DNA of 64,000 nt from Piromyces finnis finn. Taxonomy: Eukaryota > Fungi > Neocallimastigomycota. The notes below the pieces were generated by a model. That model was not told the origin of the DNA and ran no database searches. It saw only the letters and a list, made by a program, of their open reading frames with translations. Where the stretch lies: NCBI GenBank assembly GCA_002104945.1, contig MCFH01000008.1:806001-870000 (forward strand), read 5' to 3'. Below are positions 7,269 through 50,748 of the stretch, piece by piece. The position numbers and the translations under genes were made by a program. Numbering within the stretch: the stretch's first letter is position 1; each line of letters begins with the position of its first letter.

Positions 7269-10140
7269 TATATTATTTTAAAATTTAAAAAATTTAAATA
7301 TAATATTTACTTGATATTTTCTTTTTTTTTTTCAATAATATTTAATGTGATAAAAATAGAATATTAGTAATAATAACCTTTATAATATATTAAAATTAAA
7401 TTTCTAGATTAATCTACTTCTGAAGTTGTGCAGTAATTTTTATTTAAATCTTGACTATTTTATTCAACTATTATATAAATATATAAATTTATTAAATATA
7501 AAATTTTAAAGGATTTTTATAAAAAAAAAAAAAATTAAAAAAATGGTGGTAAAGATTTAGTAATTAAATTTTCAATATACATAAATCAAAGAGAATATTA
7601 AATTAAAAAATGAAATAAGTGAGAAGTTAATAAATAACTACTAAATAAATATTTAACAAATAATATGAAATAATTCATTTATTTCATTTCAAACCAACAA
7701 ATTAGGTGAATAATTTTTTATATACAAATTTTTTTATTATAATAATATATATTTTTATAAAAATCAACTCTACCGGCCAGGTTATACATATACAAATGTA
7801 TATATATATTTTATTTACTATTATTTACTAAAAAATTGTAAATAATTATTCTATAATATTTCAATTTGTAAGTTATAATTATATATTCCTCCATATTTCA
7901 CTGAAGATAAATATCCTTTCTTTTTAATAATTTGTGTCAATTTATTTATTTCTTAGTAATAATTGTAATAATTAATTTATATTTTATCTTTGTAAATAAT
8001 AATCTTCGACTATCAAGGTAAAGATATATCTTAATGAAAATATATAATATATATTTAAAATTCTGTAGGTTTAAATAAAGTAATTTTTTAAAATAATGTG
8101 TTTTTCATTTTAATATTATAATTATAATGATATTTTTTAAAAAAAAAAAAAAAGAAATGAAATGAAAAAGAAAAGAAAGAAAGAAGGGAAAGAAGAAGAA
8201 GAAGAAATTTATGTTATCTTATTTTTATTTAAATTCAATTTGTCCCTTTTAAAGTTTTTAGTTACAGAATGAAAAAATTAAAATATTAACACTCTTGATG
8301 ATTTAAAATTTATTTCCATATTCTTTGTATGGTAAAAATAACTTTAAATATTTAAATTGGTTTTTTAGGTTTTATAATATATTCATAATACATTTTAATT
8401 AATATTATTATTGGAATAAATATATATGATTTATTATTTATTATTATTATTATTATTATTAAATATATAATAGAATAAAATAATTAATTTATTCACTTTA
8501 ATGGTATTAAACAATATGATTATAATGAAAGCGTAGTAAAATATTAGAATTGAAATGTGTATTAATTAATTTGAATTTAGATTTTCAAAAATATTTATTT
8601 ATTCATACAATTGAGTCCAATATCTGAAGTTTTGAAATATAGGTACTAAAAAAACTGTTTTAGCAATTATTGTATCCCCCAAATTTATAAAGATAGGTTT
8701 TATTTATTTAAAGAATTGACTAAACTTTGTTGTGGCTCTACATTCTTTGGTATAAATATAACATTATTAAGTATGTTCTAAAGTTATATTTTAATATTTA
8801 TTATTAAGTATATTTTAAGCTATCTAATTTATTGTGTATTAACAAAGTTATTTATTATTTTTCATTCTTTTATTAACTTTTTAAATCAATATCAGTTGAT
8901 TTTTTTAAAGAGAACATATTTCTTGTAATAAAATAATTATTACATCAAAATAATTAATTATCTATAATTTAAATATATATATTTTCTTTTGAATATTTAT
9001 GAACTTAATCATTAACTTTTTGTTAATGTATAAACTAGAATTTAATTTAAAATATAAATGTTCTATTTCTCCAATAATATAATATAGTATAATGTAATAT
9101 ATATAAAGTTTAGATTTTTTTGCTATCAATAATAAAGAAGTTTTTCCAAGCAAAAGTAAAATGTTTTAATATCAATTATTTAAATATTTAAATACTATCA
9201 ATTTATATTAAACATTTATTCAGTAGGATGAGATAATTAAAATATTAAATAAATAATATATTAATATAATTGAATACAATAAATAGCCAATATATAACTA
9301 TCAAAAAATATTAATATTTAAGATATTAATTATTAATCTTAAATTTTATTAATTTTTTTTTATTATAAATAAATAATTAAAGAATATTTTAATATATAAA
9401 AATAGCATTATACTGTTTATTATTTTAGTTTAACCTTATCTTATTCTTTAATTTGAAAAATCAATATTATATAATTTCCAATTTTAATTCAATTCATTGT
9501 TAATTAATAATATACCACTATATATTAAAATAATAAATCTTTTTTTTTTTATTTCTCTTTTTTAAGTTAAAGGATTTAACTTAAATTTTTTTAAAAAAGT
9601 AAAATTTACATTATTTTGCTATTAATTAAACATACTCAATAAATATTCATTGAACAAAGGTATTAAATAAATAATATTAATAATAAATATGCTAAAAAGA
9701 TATTTTTTAAATATTAATATTTTTTTTATAGCATTATTCTGATATTTAACAATATGGACATTGTTTTAAGGAATTAATACATGCTTATAATAACAACAAT
9801 AATATCTAAAATGCTTTTATTAAATAATTTAATATATTATCAAAAATCAAAAATCTAATTATTTAATTTCATTATAAATATTATAAATATAAATATAAAT
9901 ATAAATCATTTGAAATTTTATTTTCAATTTATTTCAATTATTATTTTTTTAAACACTGAAGTTGTATTTATAAGAATAATAATAGCCAGTATTTCACAAA
10001 ATATCAAAGTATAAGTATAATTTTGTAATAAATTTAAAATATTAAAATTCAATTCAATTTTTGTAATAATTAAAATAATTATAAAATAATAAAAAGGACA
10101 ACATTAATTATAATAAAAACAAAAAAAAAAAAAAAAGTAA

Positions 10141-10142
10141 AT

Positions 10143-10180
<38 letters not shown>

Positions 10181-10191
10181 TAATAATAATA
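10141..10191. repeat. (TAA)n microsatellite
   Basis: Near-perfect TAA run with one CAA interruption. Confidence 0.85.
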
Positions 10192-10406
10192 GTAAATTTA
10201 AAGTTTTATAATTCAATTTAAATAAAAACAAAAACAAATATAAAAATAAAAATCCGTTATGGTTTTTAAATTTATTTTTAAAAAAAAATTTTTAGAAAAC
10301 ATTGGAAAATTAAACAGGATTTAAGCAATTACAAAAGATCAAATAAAAAATTAAGGAGTCAATTAAAACTAAACTATACTATTAAGTTTAAATATATAAT
10401 TCTAAA

Positions 10407-13400
10407 ATGTCGAATTCATTTCAAAATTCATTAAATGCAACAACTGTATCAAACAATTTTGTTATAAAAGATAAACAGTTAGATAATCAAAAGAAAACAT
10501 ATAAGAAGGAAGATTTAAAAATATTACAACAAAAATATTCAAATTCAATGAGTATTCCAAATCCAACACAAAAACAACTATTATATTTACAACAACAACT
10601 TCAACAACAAAGAATACAGCAACAGCAACAGCAATTACAACAACAATTAAAGCAGCAACAACAGCAAATGATATACAATAAAATACAAAATAAAAGGAAA
10701 ATTGACAGAGAAAAAATGTATATCGTTTATTCATTTAAATAAATAATTATAATAATAGATTATAATAAAAAATATTTTATTTTTAATCACATAAAATTAT
10801 TTTATTATCATTCATTATATTTAAAATAGGTTAGATACATATATATATGATTATTGCTTAAAACGTAATTATAAACAAACAGCAGAACTGCTTAAGCAAG
10901 AAGCAAAGGTTTCAGTAGAGGATATTCAACAAATTAATTCAGAAGGATTTTTATATGAGTGGTGGACAGTATTTTGGGAAATATATTCAGCAAAAGAAAA
11001 TAATGAAGAAGATACTACTTCAGATGCACTAACGTATATAGGTGCCCAAAATTTAAAAGCAAAACAAAACGAGATTTTATTACGTCAAATTAATTCAATT
11101 AATACACCGAAAGGTGTAAATTCTAGTTCTTTAACTAATCAAATAATGAACCCCCAATTAAAGCAACTTCAACAATTACAACTTCAACAGTTACATTCAA
11201 AACAAAATGCCCAATCTAGTAACATTACACAAGCATCAATATCAACCACACAGCCAAGTACAACACAATCATCGATTCAACAACAGTTACAACAACTACA
11301 AGCTCAAATAAAATCAAGTCAAACACAAAATCAATCACATTCAAATAGTTCTTCGTCTATATTAGCAAATAATCAAAATCATACAACTACTTTAAATAAT
11401 AGTAATAGCATACTACCACTAACTGTAACGTCTAATTCAACATCTGGTGCTGCCAAAAATCTTCAACTTTCAACAAGTGATAGCCCACAATTTAATATTA
11501 GTAATGCATTAACTGGTCTTACTTATACTCCACAAAGTTTACCAAATTCAAGTAGAGCATCTTTAATTCAATCTAATAATATAGCACAGTCTCAGCAACC
11601 AACACAATCACCACACTTATCTACTAATCCCTCACCCCAATTATCTCAAGGTATACTAAGAAATGGTACTAATACATCATCATTATCAAATGCAAGTAAT
11701 TTACAAAATATTGGACGGAGTAGTGCTGCCACAGCCACATTAAATTTATATGCAGCAATGAGAAACCAAAGTAACCTTTCACTTCAAGATAAAAATCAAC
11801 TACTTTCCCAATCACATATAATGAAAATGGTTCAAAATAAAGTGTTGAAGTATAAATCCATATAATTAAATAATTAAAACATATATATTGTTAAATTTAA
11901 GTATTTTTATAACTGATTAACATTATAAAATACTTTTTTTTGTTTTGTATATTTATGGTTTTCTATAGTCAAATAAAACAACAAAAAAACGGATCGAATC
12001 AGACAATAAGCACATCAACTGTAAATACCCCAACAAGTATTACAACACAGGTAAGTGAAAATATTTTATTAAAATGTTTTAATTTGGATATACATATTAA
12101 ATTATAATAATACATTGATATTAATATTACTTTTAGACAAGTGGAATTAAAAATGCCTCTACATTGAAAAAGAATGCATTATCACCTACCGATTCAGTTC
12201 AGGAAATGTCACCACCCCCATCAAAACGTATACGTGCTAATAGCGTTCAATATAGTCCCGTTTTAAATAGTAATACTATCCAAAGTCCAGTATTAACTAC
12301 TCAACAACGTATGTCATATATATAATTAATATATTATATACTATCAAATAATTTTAAAAAAAAAACACAAAAATTTGTTTATATAAAATAATAATACATA
12401 AATAAAAATAAAATAATCATAATATTTTTATAAATAATTTAAATGAATAATTATATATATAAAAAACTATTCTCTTTTATAATCAATAAAATATAATACA
12501 AAAACACACATACATTCACAAACACACATACACAAAAAAAAAAAAAAAAAAAAAAAAAGAATCTTTGAATATAAATACTAGTCCAATTATAAGCAATAAT
12601 GGATTGTTAAGTGATTTATCAACAAGTAAGTAATTTATTTATATATATATATAAATAAATAAAATTATATATGAAATGTGTAAAGGAATTATAGTATTAT
12701 TTAATCATATATACCTCTTAATATATATGTATATATATATATATTAAATAATAAAACCTTAGATTATTATTATAATTGATAAAACATTAATCAAATACCA
12801 GAAAGAAAAAAAATAATATTTATTTATATTTTATAATTATAGTAATAATTTAATATCTTATTATTGTTAAATTAAATTTATTTATATAAGATGTTAATTG
12901 TATTAATATTTTTTTTTAAATATTTATAATATATAGCTCAATTAATGGGGAAAAATTGGAATACATCAAACAAACAATTAATTAATCAACAATTACAAAA
13001 TCCACAAAATCAATTGTTATTAAAGAGAAAGCAACAACTAGGTAAATTTTCGTTTTCATTTTTGTTTTTATTAAAATGTGTCATTTATTTGAGGTTAATT
13101 AATAAATTAATTATTTATATATTTATAATATATTATGTAGGATTACAAAATACAGAAGCTCAAGAATTATTATTACAACAAAAAGCCTTACAAGCTCAAG
13201 CTCAAGGTTTAAAAACAGCTAATGCTCAAATTCAATATAATTTAAAACTAAAAGCACAACAATCTGTGAGTTATAAATATTCTTTTAAGTTATATAACAA
13301 TTATATTTTTAATTGTTATTTTAAAATTTAATTCTAATTTTAGTTTTTTTAAAATATAAATTTATCTTTATATAATAATTAATCAATGATAAAATATAGC

Positions 13401-34320: not shown

Positions 34321-35552
34321 TTTTTTTTTTTTTTTAATGGTATATAAATTCAAAAATTCAAAAATTTATTAAATAATAAATAATAAATTTAAAAAAAAAA
34401 ACCTTATAACTTCTTTTATAAAAATTTGACTTTTCTCTATTTATTTGGATTTAGAATTATTAAATAATAATGTCTAATAATAAAATAATTCTTATAATTA
34501 TCATAATAATAAAAAAGAACAGTATTAAATATAATAAATATATTTTTTATACATAATAAAAATGATAATTATTCACTTTTATTCAATTCTTCATATTTTA
34601 TTAAAATTTTTTATTAAAATTTTTTATTTCATGAAAATTTTTGTACAACCTAACAATGTTTATATAATAATAAATAAATCATATAATATTAATTTAAAAA
34701 GTTTTTTTTAATCCTGTCCTGTATTTTTGAATAAAAGAAAAAAAAGAATACCTAGCTTTATTTTTTTTTCCTTTTATTTTTTAATGTAAAATATTAAAAT
34801 ATTTATTAAAATTTTAATATGAAGTTTGGGTGTGTAATTATATAATTAAAATATCAAAGGCATGTTATTTTTCATATAATGAACTTAGTATTAAATAATA
34901 AAAATAATTACAATAGCAGCAGTAGTAGCAACAATAACAACAACAATAATAATAACAATTGAATAATGTATATAAATTATTATAGTAATTATTGATAAAA
35001 TAATAGATTATTATTTAGAATTAAAATCTTTTTTTTGTATTAATAATTAAAATTCATTTCAATTTTTAATCTTGTGTGACGCATTAATTATTAATAAAGA
35101 ATGTTCATCTAATAATCTAATCATTCAATTAATTGATTATTAATTATTAATAAAAATATATTAAATATATTAATAATTATTCTTTTTTTTTTTTTTCTAA
35201 AAATAAAAAAGTTCAATTAGATAATAATTTAATAGTTTATATAATTGAATTTAAAAAAAAAAAAAAAAAAATTTGATATACAAGATTCTTTATAACCAAT
35301 TATATATACAATATACCAATAAAAAAATAATAAATTGAAAATAAATTTAAATTCATTTATTTATAATAAAACTAAATTTAATGTTTTCAATTCAAAATTT
35401 ATTGAAGATATTTACTTGAATTAAATAATTTTATTTCAATAATAATAAAAAATATAATATATAATATTATAAAATTTAATTAATTATTAATAAAAGAAAA
35501 TATAGGAGCCTTTATAGTACATATTCAATAATAATAATAAGAATAAGAATAA

Positions 35553-37853
35553 ATGAGTAACTCAAATTCTGACAGATTTCTTTTTGGTCAACTCAATTCT
35601 AATTATCTAAATCCATATGATTGGATTGAACTTGAAAATGTTAAATCTTCATATCAAGATACTAATATAGGTGCTAATAATTTCCCTTTCAGAACAGGCG
35701 GAATAGTTTTAACAGAAGAAGAAAAAGAAGAAAAAGATAATAATCTTGAAATTATTGATTCAGTTTATTCAACAATAAATCAATATTTAAAAATATTTGA
35801 TAAAAAAGTTTTGAAAAGTGATGAAAAGAATTTTTCTAATATGGACCACAAAACTTTAAGTGGAATGATGGAAAATTTTAGAACTAATATTGATCAATTA
35901 TTAAGGCTTTTGAAAGGAAATCGTTATCCTTTATTAGCTTTAATAGGTAGAAGAGGTTGTGGTAAAAGTTCTTGCATTAATGCTATAGTTGGTAAATACA
36001 TCTATTTAATATATTTACAATTTTTATTAATTATATATTAAATAAGAATTAACCTAATTGAAAAGATATAATATATTCTGTTCCTGTTTTCATTATCAAT
36101 GAATAATAGGTCAACTTATTGCTGAACCTGGTCATATTAGAGCTCAAACAGGTCATGCAAAAATTCTCCTTTATCGTGGCAATGATAATAGTGGCATCGA
36201 TGTTTTAGATACTCGTGGTATTAATGAAGGAGAAAGACCTGAAGAGGATGATATTGCTGAAACCGCTGTTGGTAAATATCAATATTTATTAGATTTACTT
36301 TAAATTAATATTTATTATATTTCAACAATTAACTTATTTAAATTATATAAAACATAAATATATGTATTCTTATGAATAAAAGATTCTATTGTTAGTGCAT
36401 TATCTCAAGTTCCAGTAGATTGTATTTTATATTTACATAAAGCTAAAGAGTTAGATTCTGGTATTGAATCTGATTTACAAATTCTCAATCAAATTATTGT
36501 TAAAACTAATTTAAAATCAATAAGTAATTCTTATTTTTTTTTTTTTTATTATTATAACTATTATTATGGTTATTATAAATAATAATAATAAAAAAATAAA
36601 AAAAAAAAAAAAAACTAATTTTTTTTTCTATAAAAAGAAATACCAATTATTGGTGTAATTACCCATTGCGATGAACTTGAACCATCTGATATAAAAAAAC
36701 CATCTGAATGTATAAATATTTAAAATTTTTAACATAAAACTAATATTTATAAAAAATATTAATATTAACAATCAATATAATAATATTCACATAAAACATT
36801 AACATTACAGATGATGAAGAAAAGTTAGAAAATATAGAATTAGCAAAGAATTTCTTTAAAAATCAATTGGATAAATATGCACCAGATTTAAAAGATTGTA
36901 TTGTCGGTGTTGAAGCTATTTCTTCTTCTGTTATTTGGAATAAAATTCCTGATGAAAATGGTGCTATTTTACCAAAACGTGATTATCGCTATAATATAGA
37001 TAAAATTATGGATTTATTGATGAATAATATAAATATGCAAGCTATGTTTAAAACTGCACAAGTTTGTAGAGTTCAATTAATAAAAACTAATTTTGCTAAT
37101 ATGTTAATAAAGGTAATTATTTATTATTAAATAACCAATTATAAATCTATTGATATATTTTTGAATTTTATTTAAAATTTAATTTATGAAATAAGTAATT
37201 ATATTAATTTTCTATATTTATTATTTTTAAATATTAGTTATTTGCTTCTGTTACTGCAGTAGTTAGTACATTACCAGTTCCAACAGCAGACTCAGTTCCA
37301 TTAAGGTAATATATATAAAAATATTAAAAATATATATGAATGTTATAAATAAAATTTAAAATGTTGAAATATTAATAATTAAAATATATAATTTAATTTA
37401 TCAATGATATTTTATATATACATTTATTATTGCATTCCAAATAAAAGTGCACTTGAAATTTGGATGGTTTATACGATAGCAAAATTAGGAAATAATAAAT
37501 TGTCATGGGATTCTACAAAAAAATTCTTAGGTATGCTAGGAGTATCAGGTATAGCACGTTATTGTGCTCGTAAAGTTATAAGTTCTTTTTCTAAACTCTT
37601 TCCAATTGTGGGATATGGTACATCAGCAGCTATTACCTATTCTATTACACTTGGTCTTGGTAAATCAGCAATTGCTTTCTTTTTAGAGAATAAAAGTGAT
37701 GAGGAAGTAAAAGAAATTTTTAATGCAGCAAAATTAGCCATTGATGAATATAACTATCTATCTACGGAAGAAAGAGTTGAATTTGATAAACAATTCGTTG
37801 AGGGAATGAAAGAAGTTTCAAGAAGAGATGATAACACTAGTAGTAAAAAATAA
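35553..37853 (+). CDS. TRAFAC GTPase (YfjP/YeeP/Era-like) with C-terminal DUF697-like hydrophobic domain, copy 1
   Basis: Seven exons. G1 GRRGCGKS, G2 AQT, G3 DTRG, G4 THCD; then YRYNIDKIMDLL and C-terminal PVPTADSVPLSALEIWMVYTIAKL...KLFPIVGYGTSAAITYSITLGLGKSAIAFF, typical of bacterial GTPase-DUF697 proteins. Confidence 0.82.
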
Positions 37854-39643
37854 CTTTAATAGATTTATTTATATTATATCTTACCCATTTTTACACTGGA
37901 CAAAAAAAAAGGCCTCGTCGGATTAATTACATCATGCATCAATATAAAGAAAATTAATTTTTATTTTTGATTACATAAATCAATAATGATTATTAATTTA
38001 AAAATAAATTATAATATTAATAAGCACATTTTATTTTTTTTATTTAATTATACTTTATTACAACGCAACTATCAAAAATAGAATAAACAATAAATGTAAC
38101 AATAATAATAATAACAGCAATAATAATAACAACAACAACAATAATAATAATAATAATAATAATAATATAATTATTATTACATCTGTTATATATTAATAAT
38201 AATTTTTTTGATGTTATTCTTATTTCAAAAAAAAAAAAAAAAATTATGAAAAAATCATGATGGATAATAATACAATAATTTATATATAATAAATTATATA
38301 TTTTGATGATCTCTTAAAATATAATCTTTATTTTTAGTCTTATTGAAATTAAGCACAATTATTATTCTCTAGTAATATATAATTATAATTTCTTTTTTTT
38401 TTTTTTTTTTTTTTTTAATAAAACTAACAAAAATATATAGAACCCTTTTTTTTTTTAATTTGTGTTTATTTAAATTTACTTTTTTATTTATTTTATAACA
38501 AAGGTTTCAAAACAATATCAATATCAATAACAATAATGTTATATTAAATTTCATATATATATGAAAATTTCTTATATATATATTTTTAAATATTACAATT
38601 TCCATCATAGAATCATATATATTATTTAGACATTAAATATTCATTTTCTTTTCAGGAATATTACAATGTAATAATCATATTATTAAAAAAATTTTTGTAA
38701 ATTATTTTAAACATGGTATTTGATAATTTAATAATATATTTATGTATCAATTCAAACTATATTTCCATATTCACACCTTTCAACAACTTTTGAAGATTTC
38801 AATTATTTATCATTATTGAAATCCTCTAACTCATCACGGAATAACTTTTTTTTTTATATTTGTTAATTTTAATTTTAAAGTACAAGAATATTTTATATTT
38901 AATTTCACTAATTCCAAAAAAAGAAAAAAAATTAATTAAAATAAATTTTTTTAAAATTTTTAATTTTAAATAATTGGTTCCATCAAAGTAGGTTATAACA
39001 AAATAAATTTCAAATGAAACCATTACAAAATAATAAATAATAAAAAAAAACAATTAAAATAGTATTAATTTTGGTTAATTTCTTTATTATATTACATATG
39101 TTATTTGTTTTATAATAACTTATAAATTTATATTATTCAAGAATATTAGTATAATGTAATGTACTTTTTATAATTTTTAAAAATATTTTTCAACGATAAA
39201 TTGTTTATTTTCAAATAGCCATTATAAATTTTATAGCCACAAGCAATTCAACTCAATTTATGGGAAGAGTTAATTAGTTGGAAAAAAAAAAGATATTAAA
39301 TATTAAAATAAATATAAATTATTACAACTTTTTTTTTTGCTGTCTTTTGTACCTTTAATATTATAAATATAAATTAAAAAAAAAAAAAATAAGTTGTAAA
39401 ATTATACTTTTATATCTGGTTATGATTACTTTTCTTTTAAATTAAAGGATTATACTTTATATTTTAATAAATAACTTGATACATTTTAAATTCGAATTCT
39501 TACACCAATATTAATTTTTATTAAATGATAAGTAATAAAAAGACTATTAATAACAATTAAAAATTTATTTATAAATTCCTCATTTATTAAAATAATTAAA
39601 TTTTGATTTTTTCGACATTTCAATTTAATAATAAAAGATTTCA

Positions 39644-42321
39644 ATGACCAATAATAAAAAAATTATAAATAAAAATAAAACAAAAGTATTCAACTCATTT
39701 GATAAATATAAAAATAAATTTTTTAATTTAAATGAAAACCTAAAGAAAAATTTAAATTCAATTCACATACATAAAAATAAAGAAAGAGAGCCAGATAATA
39801 AAAGTAGAAGCCCTTCACCGGAATTAAGTAAAAAAGGAAAGCAAGTAAAGGATAAAAGTGAAGAATCATCTTCAAATAATTTATCTTCTTCAGAAAATCT
39901 TGAAACAGACACAATTTCAATAATTTCAACAAATAACATGTGTAATTCATCAACTAAAATGGATGTTGACGATATAATTGTAGAAAATTTAATTAATATC
40001 AATGAAAATTCTGAAAGTAAAAAAAAAAATAATGATAATAATAAGCAATTAAAAGGCAGTAGTAGTACCTCTAGTTTTGAAGAAAACATGCCAGACATAC
40101 GAAAAGGAAATATTGAAGATGTGAATATTGATTTTAATAATCTTATCCATAAAGGTGATTCATTCCAATCCGATACATCTTCCACACTTTATGGTAATTC
40201 TAAATTTAATAAAAATAGACAAGATAATGTTGAAGTATTAAATAGTCAGGAAAAGAATAAGAAAATGATGGAGACTATTAATGTAATTAATAATTTAGTT
40301 AATGACTATATTGAACTAATAAATAAAAAAAACAAGGAAAATGATACAAAGCAACCCGAATTAATTAATTTAGAAAATTTCCATAATAGTACCAATTATT
40401 TAATTTCTCTTTTAAATGAAGATAGATATCCATTAATTGCCCTTATTGGCAGAAGAGGTAGTGGAAAAAGTTCATTTGTTAATGCAATTATAGGTAAAAA
40501 AGTTGCGGAATTAGGTAATATTTGTTCTCAAACTGGTAAAGCCAATTTTTTAAGTTATCGTGGCAATAATAACAGTGGAATAGATATTCTGGATACTCGT
40601 GGTATTAATGAAGGCCAAAAACCACAAGAAGAAGATCAGTATGAAACTCCAGTTGGTAAGTATTAATAATTAATATATATAAATATATATTATAATAAAT
40701 GCTTAACCCATTCTTTTTATAATAATAATATCATTAAGAATCAATTGTTGCTGCGCTTACTAAATACCCAGTTGATTGTATTTTATATTTACATAAAGCC
40801 AAAGAATTAGATTCAGGTATTGAATCAGATATCCAACAATTAAACGAAATAATCGTAAAAGCCAATATTCAAAATCTAAGTAAGTATTATTTTTTTCAAA
40901 ACAACAATAACAACAACAACAACAGCAGCAGCAGCAACATATATTTATTAAATAATAGTAAAATAACTCTATTTTTTTATTATTATTATTTTTTAATTTT
41001 TAAAAAATTCTTAATACCTCTTTGTAATATTTAGAAATTCCAATTATTGGTATTGTTACTCATTGTGATGAATTAGAACCTTCAGATTTGAAAAAGGCTA
41101 TAGATTGTAGGTTTAAAAAAAAAAAAACATATAAACTCATCAATTTTATTTTAATATTGGTTAAAATATAATAATTTATATACTTAACTATTTTTCAATA
41201 CTCAAACATTATTATAATTATTTATTTCTTTAAATAATAGATGATGAAGAAAAATTAGAAAATATTTTAAAAGCACAAGCATTACTAAAACAACAACTAC
41301 TTAAATATGCACCAGATATAAAAGATTGTTTAGTTGGTGTTGAAGTAGTATCATCAGCAATTATATGGAAAAAAGAACCAGATGAAAATGGTGACATTCT
41401 TCCAAAACGTGACTATCGTTATAACATTGATAAAATTATTGATTTATTAATAAATAATATAAAATTAAAAGCTATGTTTAAGGTATGTTTTTTTCTTTTT
41501 TTAAAAAGAAAAAAAAAATTAGAAAAAAAATTAATTTTCCTTGTTTTCAAATAATTTTAGATTGCTCAAATATGTAATATTCAAGAAGTTAAAGTGAAAT
41601 TAGCAAATGAGCTTTCAGAGGTAAAAATAATAATAATAATAATGATTTAGTATTATAAAGTATTTACATAAAAAATAATGTAAATATAGTATTATTTAAT
41701 TATCATTATTATTAATAAAATCTATTTTTTAATATTAAATAATAATAGTTAATAAGTAGTTTTGTTACTGTAATCAGTTCTGTGCCAAATCCTTATTCCC
41801 AAAATCTTCCATTAAAGTAAGTTTAAAAAATTAAAAGAAAACAAAAGAAAAAATCAAATAAATAAAAATTAATAATAAATAGACAAATAAACAATAAAAT
41901 TAAATTCTTTTTTTTTTTTATTTAATTAAATTTTATATAAATCATAAATCATAGTGATTTAAGAGTATGGATGATCTATACAATCGCTCGTTTAAATAAT
42001 TCAACGGTGACGTATGAAACTGTTTATGAATTTTTAAATATGTTTGGTTTTCTACGACTTTCAGGCTATGCTATTTATAATGTAGTTGGAGCTATTACAA
42101 AAGTTATTCCAGGTTTTGGTAATAAAGTTAACCTTCGATCAAAAAAAGCGCTTTCCTTAGCGTTAGGAAAAGCTGCAATTGCTTACTTTTTGGAAAATAA
42201 AAGTCAAGACAATGCTATAGAAATCTTTAACGCCACACGTAATGAACTAGAAAAGACAATCACTGAAGAAAGTCTTCAAGCACACCAAGACATGATTAAT
42301 AGTTTAAATCATATGGAATAA
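39644..42321 (+). CDS. GTPase + DUF697-like protein, copy 2 (tandem paralog with long low-complexity N-terminus)
   Basis: Seven exons. RYPLIALIGRRGSGKSSFVNAIIG, LDTRGINEG, PVDCILYLHKAKELDSGIESD, THCDELEPSD and PKRDYRYNIDKI are near-identical to copy 1. Confidence 0.82.
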
Positions 42322-42328
42322 ATATCAA

Positions 42329-42364
<36 letters not shown>

Positions 42365-42436
42365 CATATAATACCACATTTTTGAAAACAATAAAGTATT
42401 ATTATTCATTATTTATTAATTATTTTTATTTTAAAT

Positions 42437-42843: not shown

Positions 42844-44656
<1,813 letters not shown>

Positions 44657-48077: not shown

Positions 48078-50748
48078 CTAATATTTTGGTTCTTTACATT
48101 CTGTACATTTATAAGTATTATCTGGATTAAGCCAATCTTCCAATGGTATATTTACTTTTGATTTTTTAATTTTTCTTCCTTTTAATCCCTTTAAAATTGG
48201 TCTTCCCATATCGTTTAGTTGTTCTATTGAGCTAAGAATAATATCTATTATATTATTAGAAAATAAAAATAATAAATAAAATGTGATTATTAAAAATCAC
48301 CATTTATTATAAAATTTCGTTTTAAATTATACATACGATCTAATAATAAACGACTAGTTCTTATTTTATCAACATAATTATTTGATTTATGAGTGAGCCA
48401 TGGCAAGAAATAATTTTCAATTTCTGTTTCTCTAGGATCATAAAAGAATCCATTATCATTAAGAGTTTCAAATACGGATGGTATTAAATTAGATAAATAT
48501 GAATTTGTGAATGATCTAGCTGCTATTTTTTCAACAACTTCTTTCTTTTCTTCCATTAATTTTAACTTTTCTGTAATGCGACGATTCTTTAATAATAATA
48601 TTATAAAAAATTATATTTTATTTTTTAAAAAGTTATTAATTATCTTTTATGGTCAAATCAAATTAAATCAACTTTATCATATCATAAAAATAATAAATAT
48701 AAATATTAGTATGTGTACCTTTTCTTCAGTTCTACGTCTTTCTGCATCTTCTAGTCTTTGAACTTCTGCTAATTCTGCGTTTCTTTTTTCTTCAAAATCA
48801 ATCTTTTTTTTTTTTTAAATGATTATAATAATTAAATATTAATATAAATATTAATATTATTTATAAGATAAAAATTTATATATATTCATTAATATCAATA
48901 TATATGTAATTTATATACTATATATAATGATAGAACATTGTATTTTTATATATACTTGATGCTTTCTTAGCATTTCTAATTCCTCTTCTTCCATAACCTC
49001 AATTAATGCTTGTTCAAGAGTTTTTCCAACAAGAACTTCAAGAATTGGCTCAACCTGTAAAAAGTAATATATATAAATAAAAATTAATATTAAAATTTAT
49101 AATCGATTATTTATTAAAAAGTATACAAAATATAGAAATCAGTTTTTTTCTGATATATTTTTCATTTAATTAATTTTTACCTCAAAGTTAAAGTCAAACA
49201 ATTCTCCATCATAAATTTGTGTGGCTGCATCAATACCAGACTTTTGTGGAATATATAAAGGTGATGGTGCTCTATCTAAGAAAAGATCAGTTTGAGTGGC
49301 GGCAATTGCTTCTGGTACTTTATCATAAAGTTCTTCTAAATAAAGATCTGTTTGAATTTCTACATGATGACGACCTTCTACTGGTTCAGGAGTTTTTATT
49401 CTTCTTTTCTCTGCAGCTCTTTTTCGTGCTTTTGCTCTTCTCTTCATTTCCTCTTGTTTATGAAGTTCTAATGGATCTGGTTCTGATTGCTATTATTTAT
49501 TTATTTTTTATATTTAATTAATTAAATATTTCCAAATATTATTTATATTGAGTAGAGCATAAATTAATTTATATATAGATCATATAAGAAAATAAAATAG
49601 AGATAATAAATTTATAGTTAAAAGATTGTTTATATTTTTTTAATACTTTTAAATACTCTATATTAATAAAAGGAATGTTTTATTATTTATATATATTAAT
49701 CATCAATTTACTAATGGTAATATTTTTGCTGCATAAGTATTTCCACGAACAACTCTTGGATCATACATAATATTGCATGCACTATAATATTAAAAAATAA
49801 ATAAGCATTTTAATAATGATGGGGAAAAGATATTATTAATAGTCATTATTAATAAATTAATAATATTTTTATACTTTTTTATACTAATAAAATTATAAAA
49901 ATTTTTTTTTATAATAAATATATTTACATTCTTTGTTTTTCTTGATTAAATTCATTTTTCTGAATAGAAAGCATTTTTTCTAATTCATATGGATCTCTAT
50001 ATTTTCTTCTTTGAGAAGGTGCTGGAATAGCTCTTGGTTCACTAGAAAATTTATAATTTTCAACACCAACAGGCTTCATAATAGAAGTTTTTGCATTTTG
50101 GTTTTTGTTATTTACAGCTGAATAGTAATTATTTTGTATATTATTGACTTGTTCTTCAAACATTTCTGTATTCTGACTTTCTTCTTCTGGCATATTAGTA
50201 ATTTCAGTAATAGGTGATTCCTCTGTTACATTTTGATCCATTATGACATTATCTATTTTTGATAATTCATCATTATTAATTGGAGGTGTCATGACTACTT
50301 CCTCAACTATTAAAGATTCTTTATTTTGATTATCAATTGTAGAATTTTCAATTTTATTTGTTTCATCATTTTTTTCAGTAGATGGTACGACTATTTCTGA
50401 TTCAATTATTGTTTCATTTGGTTCTGGAATAGATTCAGTTGGAGTTTCTGTATTGGTATTTATAACTTCTTCTTTTGTTTCCTCGTTTACATCTGATACA
50501 TTTGCTCCTTGAATTTCAATATTTACAGTTTCCAATGCTGGTTCTTGAATATTTGAATCATCTGGAAGATTTTGAACTTCTTGTAATTCTTTTGATTTCT
50601 CATTTATTATTTCATTTGTTGTTTTTTCTTCTGATGTTTCTTCAATGACTTCCTCTACTGATTGTACTTGCTCAAATTCATTCATGTCTGGTGCATTTTC
50701 TGTAACAACATTTGATCCTTCATTTGTATTTGTATTTTCCGTTTCCAT
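48078..50748 (-). CDS. RSPH3: Radial spoke head protein 3 (RSP3, axonemal AKAP-type scaffold) with acidic N-terminal extension
   Basis: YKFSSEPRA..RRKYRDP, NIMYDPRVVRGNTYAAKILP, TPEPVEGRHHVEIQTDLYLEEL, ATQTDLFLDRAPSPLYIPQKSGIDAATQIYDGELFDF, PILEVLVGKTLEQALIEVMEEEEL. Confidence 0.93.

Follow-up and report, generated by a model that had tools for sequence, protein, structure and literature searches.

The closest described relatives of the genes considered here are bacterial GTPase-DUF697 proteins, including DL240_02955 of Lujinxingia litoralis and homologs in Larkinella, Archangium and Peribacillus. Comparative analysis of a 64,000-nucleotide stretch of the genome of the anaerobic gut fungus Piromyces finnis (GenBank assembly GCA_002104945.1, contig MCFH01000008.1, positions 806,001 to 870,000 of the forward strand; the whole stretch is referred to below as the window) revealed two intron-bearing paralogs in tandem on the + strand, at window positions 35553-37853 (gene 1, paralog A) and 39644/39962-42321 (gene 2, paralog B), whose products resemble these bacterial proteins over their whole architecture at 29-39% identity. 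The layout common to the bacterial and fungal proteins consists of an N-terminal helix, a G domain, a helix following the G domain with the motif RDxRW/Y, and a tail of the form PxPxxD...GxAAIAYF. The fungal genes differ from the bacterial ones in having introns, N-terminal extensions and a second, tandem copy whose tail is degraded; the hydrophobicity of the fungal tail is much lower, and the eukaryotic sequences form a separate, long-stemmed clade. To our knowledge, there is no functional study of the bacterial family, and the full-text literature on DUF697 with GTPase yielded two mentions, both incidental. The database names of the bacterial relatives are 'predicted GTPase/uncharacterized protein (DUF697 family)' at JGI and 'GTPase family protein' at NCBI.

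Among better known proteins, Escherichia coli YfjP (with YeeP and YkfA, a group of cryptic prophage GTPases) resembles the fungal proteins in the G module and its flanking helices and has a G4 motif of the SQSD type, but it is a protein of 287 amino acids without a DUF697 tail, is encoded in a prophage island, and its alignment with the fungal family ends before the tail. The DUF697 prototype of E. coli, YcjF, whose annotation is that of an inner membrane protein with a DUF697 domain, is likewise paired with a P-loop NTPase, YcjX, although on two polypeptides; ycjF adjoins ycjX in nearly all species studied, sometimes by the psp membrane-stress operon (PMC3041696). YcjX, however, is a DUF463 protein and not an MMR_HSR1 GTPase. 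Regarding the IRG (p47) GTPases, the likeness is limited to the overall layout of N-terminal helices, G domain and C-terminal helical domain; the fungal proteins lack a match to the family model (IIGP, PF05049), structural similarity is low, and their tail is unlike the IRG helical domain. Two surveys of horizontal transfer into early fungi and gut fungi do not mention the gene pair, and one of them lists a different MMR_HSR1 protein of P. finnis, ORX42614.1, as a xenolog ('Klebsiella pneumoniae' neighbour, K06946; PMC11291939).

Family membership and domain architecture

Judged by sequence, the pair is a new eukaryotic member clade of the known bacterial GTPase-DUF697 family. Both proteins align end to end and collinearly with bacterial proteins of 405-450 amino acids (29-34% identity in alignment A1), tblastn reaches 130 bacterial loci at E values down to 9e-76, and a profile built from fungal sequences only reaches bacterial members at E values of 1e-76 and below. 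In A1, fungi and bacteria alike keep the P-loop GRRGxGKS, the threonine of QTG, DTRG and the G4 motif without change. Both proteins pass the Pfam model MMR_HSR1 (PF01926), which is the best Pfam match (41.2 bits against a cut-off of 21.9 for the gene 2 protein, P0001); P0001 also reaches 35.2 bits with AIG1 (PF04548; threshold 27), but this overlaps the better MMR_HSR1 match, and Toc34 is a moderate sequence match in the PDB (E 1.6e-9). Scans with NCBIfam and PADLOC returned no fitting family or defence-system model, the matches to LeoA/LeoBC and mad8 being weak P-loop similarity.

The wider distribution of the family is overwhelmingly bacterial. When 1.84 billion representatives were searched exhaustively with a profile, there were 965 matches, and above the first bacterial match stood only P0037 (gene 1), P0129 and P0130, which are full or near-full proteins of the eukaryotic type, and short gut-fungal fragments. 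In a word-index profile search with 606 matches at E<=1e-5, the named ones among the matches listed were bacterial except for gut-fungal entries, and the nearest large clusters of the ESM Atlas are all bacterial. The 130 bacterial loci of the genome scan are distributed over Myxococcota, Bacteroidota (Larkinella), Rhodothermota, Cyanobacteria, Bacillota, Actinomycetota and Hydrogenedentota, while a search of viral contigs found no relatives. Three bacterial members have unusual architectures (P0149, P0233 and P0258): two are fusions of a TIR_2 domain, at the N-terminus, with the GTPase-DUF697 protein, and one has a second, N-terminal DUF697.

These results bear on several claims of the original prediction, an earlier note on this DNA. 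It had described tandem, intron-bearing GTPase paralogs about 1.8 kb apart, which was borne out by two seven-exon genes with a gap of 1,790 nucleotides, and the motifs that it listed (GRRGxGKS/QT/DTRG/THCD, PVPTADSVPL, KLFPIVG and LGKSAIAFF) are all present in the region. The assignment to a bacterial-type family likewise holds, with full-length collinear homologs in bacteria and named relatives that are overwhelmingly bacterial. The likeness drawn to YfjP/YeeP-like GTPases with a DUF697 domain was correct for the G module, for which alignment of A1 with E. coli YfjP by hhalign gives a probability of 97.5% (E 6.5e-12, 211 columns), and incorrect for the architecture, YfjP being short and tail-less. 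The suggestion that the G4 motif is special in being non-canonical did not stand: the motif is T[HQ]xD followed by xxP across the family (THCDELEP in both genes; TQCD, THCD and TQVD in relatives; THAD, THTD and THVD in aphelid-type proteins), and the aspartate that specifies guanine is kept. The residue after DTRG, at the position of the catalytic glutamine of Ras, is isoleucine or leucine; a hydrophobic residue in place of this glutamine suggests catalysis that needs a partner or a dimer.

Regarding the C-terminal tail, an AlphaFold model of the gene 1 tail, made with a 140-sequence alignment (A3), has eight helices and a mean predicted local distance difference test score (pLDDT) of 85.2, and its best match in the ESM Atlas is a stand-alone DUF697 cluster (template modelling (TM) scores 0.73/0.81 over 139 residues, root mean square deviation 2.6). 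Bacterial homologs match the Pfam DUF697 model (PF05128) at 21-28 bits, around its cut-off of 27.7. Among solved structures in the PDB nothing resembles the tail model, the best Z score being 7.1 among noise-level helical matches. The two copies differ in this domain: the highest mean Kyte-Doolittle hydropathy over 19 residues is 1.29 in gene 2 and 1.63 in gene 1, compared with 2.0-2.4 in aphelid and bacterial members, and the gene 2 tail departs from the bacterial consensus at D390Q, R436Y, S454N, A458K and T462S, positions that are kept in gene 1. In group B as a whole, no segment exceeds a 19-residue mean of 1.3. By residue comparison, the tail of gene 2 is thus degraded, that is, less hydrophobic and without several near-invariant residues of the family.

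The Pfam name of the G domain, '50S ribosome-binding GTPase', raises the alternative that the pair encodes ribosome-assembly GTPases of the Era/Der/YihA type, and the best sequence matches among solved structures are indeed Der/EngA, Toc34 and Era, with MMR_HSR1 as the leading Pfam family. The NCBIfam models argue otherwise, Era scoring 36.9 against a cut-off of 237 and Der 26.6 against 306.7, with YihA and the rest far under their cut-offs; moreover, no KH or other RNA-binding domain was found in the proteins, and the tail that defines the family is predicted to have the fold of a membrane-protein domain. A role in ribosome assembly is accordingly considered very unlikely.

Origin and history of the pair

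Maximum-likelihood trees (LG+C20) were built from 69 and 97 rows, with 15 eukaryotic rows. All 15 form one clade with support of 100/100, comprising gut fungi, the aphelids Amoeboaphelidium protococcarum and A. occidentale, and environmental eukaryotes, on a long shared stem (0.84-0.9). Within it, the gut fungi form a clade (100/99-100) that includes groups A and B, and the aphelid-type sequences form another (100/99); the eukaryotic proteins also share the derived motifs RDYRYN and YFLExKS, which are absent from bacteria. In the 97-row tree a branch supported at 100/100 splits an Erysipelotrichia-type subfamily from everything else, and the eukaryotic clade lies in the basal polytomy of the remaining bacteria, inside no gut taxon. 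A weak grouping with the Erysipelotrichia type, seen in the 69-row tree (70/18), was rejected, since it was gone with denser sampling.

The aphelid orthologs were reached through P0129, an intermediate scorer like P0130: a search with this protein led to MP228_001615 of A. protococcarum (P0292) and to several further relatives. The A. protococcarum gene (L084 8001-9557) is intronless, and 15 in-frame TAA/TAG codons are read as glutamine in the deposited protein, among them the codon for the glutamine of the switch-I QTG. A variant nuclear genetic code has been reported for this species in the literature, and the reading of TAA/TAG as glutamine fits that code; the gene is a resident nuclear gene and not contamination. 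A second protein, P0293, is in a 90%-identity cluster with KAI3658219.1 of A. occidentale. A further contig, L083, is eukaryotic, with RPS11 carrying the eukaryotic N-terminal domain, UNC-50 and Yju2 as neighbours of the ortholog, and has microsynteny with the A. protococcarum locus, with three genes in common including RPS11; its gene (10001-11686) contains a 48-nucleotide GT-AG intron inside a P-loop glycine codon, which the gene caller had read through, adding 16 spurious residues. No named ortholog from chytrids, blastoclads, mucoromycotes or dikaryans was found in the searches made.

Within the gut fungi, five of the six introns of each gene have a counterpart of identical position and phase in the other gene, with a constant offset of 31 residues, and were therefore gained before the A/B duplication; the introns were acquired after the entry of the gene into eukaryotes. 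In Neocallimastix californiae both orthologs are present in tandem and in the same orientation, with intron positions the same wherever tblastn resolves them (all but the private intron of gene 1 and one intron of gene 2) and, as in the window, the gene 2 ortholog is followed downstream by a kinase gene encoded on the other strand (L085 20428-22483). The A/B duplication is older than the split of Piromyces and Neocallimastix. After it the copies diverged unequally, the branch length being 0.51 for group B and 0.16 for group A, and group B lost the conserved N-terminal motif and has a low-complexity N-terminus instead.

Two intron-free, cDNA-like contigs from related fungi align exon by exon to the models, L086 to gene 1 and L087 to gene 2, and the alignment blocks stop exactly at the exon borders of the window models. 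The ratio of nonsynonymous to synonymous substitution rates (dN/dS) is 0.10 for gene 1 against its ortholog in L086 and 0.12 for gene 2 against that in L087. On these comparisons, the pair represents conserved, expressed nuclear genes, and both copies are under strong purifying selection.

The original prediction had proposed a candidate acquisition by gut fungi from gut bacteria, to be checked by phylogeny for nesting within gut bacteria. A recent horizontal transfer confined to the anaerobic gut fungi, with gut or rumen bacteria as donors, would agree with the many bacterial genes that these fungi carry according to the literature, and with the bacterial nature of the family. The trees, however, show no such nesting, and the algae-parasitising aphelids have orthologs in the same 100/100 clade, contamination of the aphelid data being ruled out by the TAA/TAG codons read as glutamine. 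The Erysipelotrichia-type subfamily is parted from the eukaryotes by the 100/100 branch, and the bacterial sequences of highest identity belong to Bradymonadales, Larkinella, Archangium, Polyangiaceae, cyanobacteria and Peribacillus, the nearest bacteria being soil and water members of Myxococcota, Bacteroidota, Cyanobacteria and Bacillota. Furthermore, the A/B duplication is younger than five of the introns, and the pair is shared by different genera. A recent gut-bacterial transfer is for these reasons highly improbable. A bacterial origin of the pair itself is the parsimonious reading, because the family is otherwise bacterial, and the phylogeny indicates that the transfer is old and not gut-specific, with nothing tying it to the gut. 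The history would then be one ancient transfer from a bacterium to a holomycotan, after which either most fungi lost the gene or one eukaryote later handed it to another.

Proposed mechanism and weighing of the evidence

Each protein consists of an N-terminal helix, a YfjP-like G domain of the Era superclass in which every nucleotide-binding motif is intact, and a moderately hydrophobic, eight-helix domain with the predicted DUF697 fold, and may be placed on the cytosolic face of a membrane by the DUF697 bundle. Cycling could proceed by GTP-dependent dimerisation of the G domains, since a hydrophobic residue replaces the catalytic glutamine, as in other GTPases dependent on a partner or cofactor. 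The membrane-binding tail would come from paralog A, and paralog B, with its degraded tail and low-complexity N-terminus, would be a regulatory partner of A. This mechanistic part, a dimerising, membrane-associated GTPase switch with A as the anchor and B as the regulator, is offered tentatively, as a possibility rather than as the probable outcome. In a more far-reaching version, the pair would be what the fungi have left of a holomycotan membrane GTPase system, ancient and derived from bacteria, that was kept only in lineages such as aphelids and gut fungi; it would form an obligate A/B heterodimer, the membrane-bound subunit recruiting the regulatory one with the degraded tail, and would serve in endomembrane stress, remodelling or defence as an independent analogue of IRG/GIMAP systems. 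This version is judged unlikely.

A cell-autonomous defence GTPase pair of the IRG/GIMAP type is the functional alternative suggested by structure comparison, the best whole-chain Foldseek matches being Irga6, Irgb6, Irgb10 and GM4951 (E ~1e-7, ~300 aligned residues). It would also agree with the N-terminal TIR domain of two bacterial relatives and with the homology of the G module to YfjP, which lies in the CP4-57 prophage flanked by anti-phage genes. The IRG matches, however, have TM scores of 0.36-0.46 and Z scores of ~15, no higher than matches to the G domain only, the tail alone finds no IRG domain above noise, and the Pfam IIGP model is without a match in the fungal proteins. The two genes are, in addition, single-copy orthologs under strong purifying selection, unlike immune families, which evolve fast and expand. 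A defence function of this kind therefore has little probability.

The favoured statement as a whole, that the pair is a eukaryotic branch of the GTPase-DUF697 family, acquired anciently from bacteria and acting as a membrane-associated, dimerising switch, is carried mainly by the findings on identity and evolution and is judged moderately probable. A number of results pull in the other direction. Regarding the tail, the Pfam DUF697 model (PF05128) has no match in either fungal protein, exon-wise or whole, nor in the aphelid-type proteins, and the A3 tail profile gives no significant match to E. coli YcjF by hhalign (probability 0.6%, E 0.089). For the C-terminal DUF697 domain of the original prediction, the predicted fold and the bacterial homologs speak in favour and the Pfam model against. 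The fungal tails are also only weakly hydrophobic, so that membrane insertion is putative. Regarding genomic context, no operon partner that might point to a function is common across bacterial phyla, conserved neighbours being found only within Larkinella or within Polyangiaceae. Regarding transcription, expression in P. finnis itself is supported indirectly: of the words sampled from 35500-42400, a share of 0.47-0.53 occurs in four runs belonging to three studies, or about half, which agrees with the exon share (0.51).

Regarding ancestry, approximately unbiased (AU) tests do not reject as sister group the cyanobacteria type (p 0.25) or the Myxococcota/Bacteroidota type (p 0.28), and to explain the patchy distribution among eukaryotes, many losses or a second transfer are required. 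The latter point is also where separate arrival in gut fungi and aphelids has to be weighed, either from closely related bacterial donors or by transfer between the two eukaryotic lineages, in place of inheritance from a common holomycotan ancestor. It would account for the very patchy distribution, with no other named fungal ortholog in the searches made, and for the gene structures, the aphelid genes having no or few introns and the fungal genes six, at other positions. The single eukaryotic clade, its long shared stem and the derived motifs RDYRYN and YFLExKS stand against it; they argue specifically against two bacterial donors and are still compatible with transfer from one eukaryote to another. 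Taken overall, separate arrival is regarded as rather unlikely, and a single ancient entry from bacteria is preferred.

Gene models, neighbouring genes and significance

The gene models were made by sequence reading and by joining exons in a script (Table 1). Searches of the spliced models were run exon by exon, the Pfam scan giving P-loop and MMR_HSR1 matches only, and subsequent searches used the database proteins P0001 and P0037. Each gene has six introns of 78-155 nucleotides, all 12 with GT-AG borders, in a window that is very AT-rich (G+C about 20%). The joined translation of gene 1 is identical to P0037 (BCR36DRAFT_320835). The product of gene 2 has 653 amino acids from the first ATG (39644) or 548 from Met107 (39962), and its translation from Met107 is identical to P0001 (BCR36DRAFT_281237), whose annotated start is this Met107; the products of the two genes are ~50% identical. 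In L087, the counterpart of 39644-39961 is open and similar, with about half of the residues conserved, and lacks an in-frame ATG, on account of which the annotated start of gene 2 (39962) seems more likely than 39644. For the stretch 39644-39961 there are two possible readings, a 5' leader that is conserved and an extension of the N-terminus peculiar to this species.

Table 1. Window coordinates of the features of the tandem GTPase-DUF697 pair
Feature	Position	Strand	Remarks
Gene 1 (paralog A, conservative copy)	35553..37853	+	7 exons, 529 amino acids
Gene 1 exons 1-4	35553-35991, 36110-36271, 36383-36523, 36638-36709	+	
Gene 1 exons 5-7	36811-37112, 37238-37305, 37448-37853	+	
Gene 1 P-loop (G1) GRRGCGKS	35946..35969	+	columns invariant in alignments A1 and A2
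Gene 1 private intron	35992..36109	+	phase 1, 7 codons past the P-loop; uninterrupted in gene 2
Gene 1 G3 DTRG, then Ile	36208..36219	+	columns invariant in A1
Gene 1 G4 THCD	36661..36672	+	T[HQ]xD at the same place in bacteria and aphelids
Gene 1 tail, DUF697 fold (predicted)	36984..37751	+	residues 330-496, exons 5-7, eight predicted helices
Gene 2 (paralog B, divergent copy)	39644..42321	+	7 exons
Gene 2 upstream stretch	39644-39961	+	in-frame, low-complexity, 106 residues; possible N-terminal extension or 5' leader
Gene 2 exons 1-4	39644-40655, 40739-40879, 41035-41106, 41241-41482	+	
Gene 2 exons 5-7	41561-41620, 41749-41816, 41955-42321	+	
Gene 2 P-loop GRRGSGKS	40448..40471	+	
Gene 2 G3 DTRG	40592..40603	+	
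Gene 2 G4 THCD	41058..41069	+	
Gene 2 private intron	41483..41560	+	phase 0, within the equivalent of gene 1 exon 5
Gene 2 degraded DUF697-like tail	41417..42261	+	P0001 residues 362-528

A further gut-fungal protein, P0016 (514 amino acids, from a JGI contig of 1545 nucleotides), resembles paralog A in its first half (N-terminal motif, GCGK P-loop) and paralog B in its second; it may be an assembly artefact in which two transcripts were joined through the conserved middle, or else a genuine recombinant gene of another gut fungus. Downstream of the pair, an exon at window positions 43877-44230 (- strand) has the look of a protein kinase of the AGC/PKA type (...YRDLKPE...), and the neighbourhood is syntenic with N. 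californiae. An open reading frame at 49166-49447 (- strand) contains repeated TQTDL(Y/F)L motifs and is reminiscent of flagellar radial spoke protein 3.

Thus, the pair provides a eukaryotic foothold for the large bacterial GTPase-DUF697 family, and it corrects an attractive but wrong story, since a bacterial look does not by itself make a gene of a gut fungus an acquisition from the gut. Because the gene is common to aphelids and Neocallimastigomycota, with no other named fungus in the searches made, it is useful as a marker of early holomycotan gene gain and loss, or of transfer between eukaryotes. A conserved A/B pair in which one tail is degraded would also represent a simple system for probing the role of DUF697.

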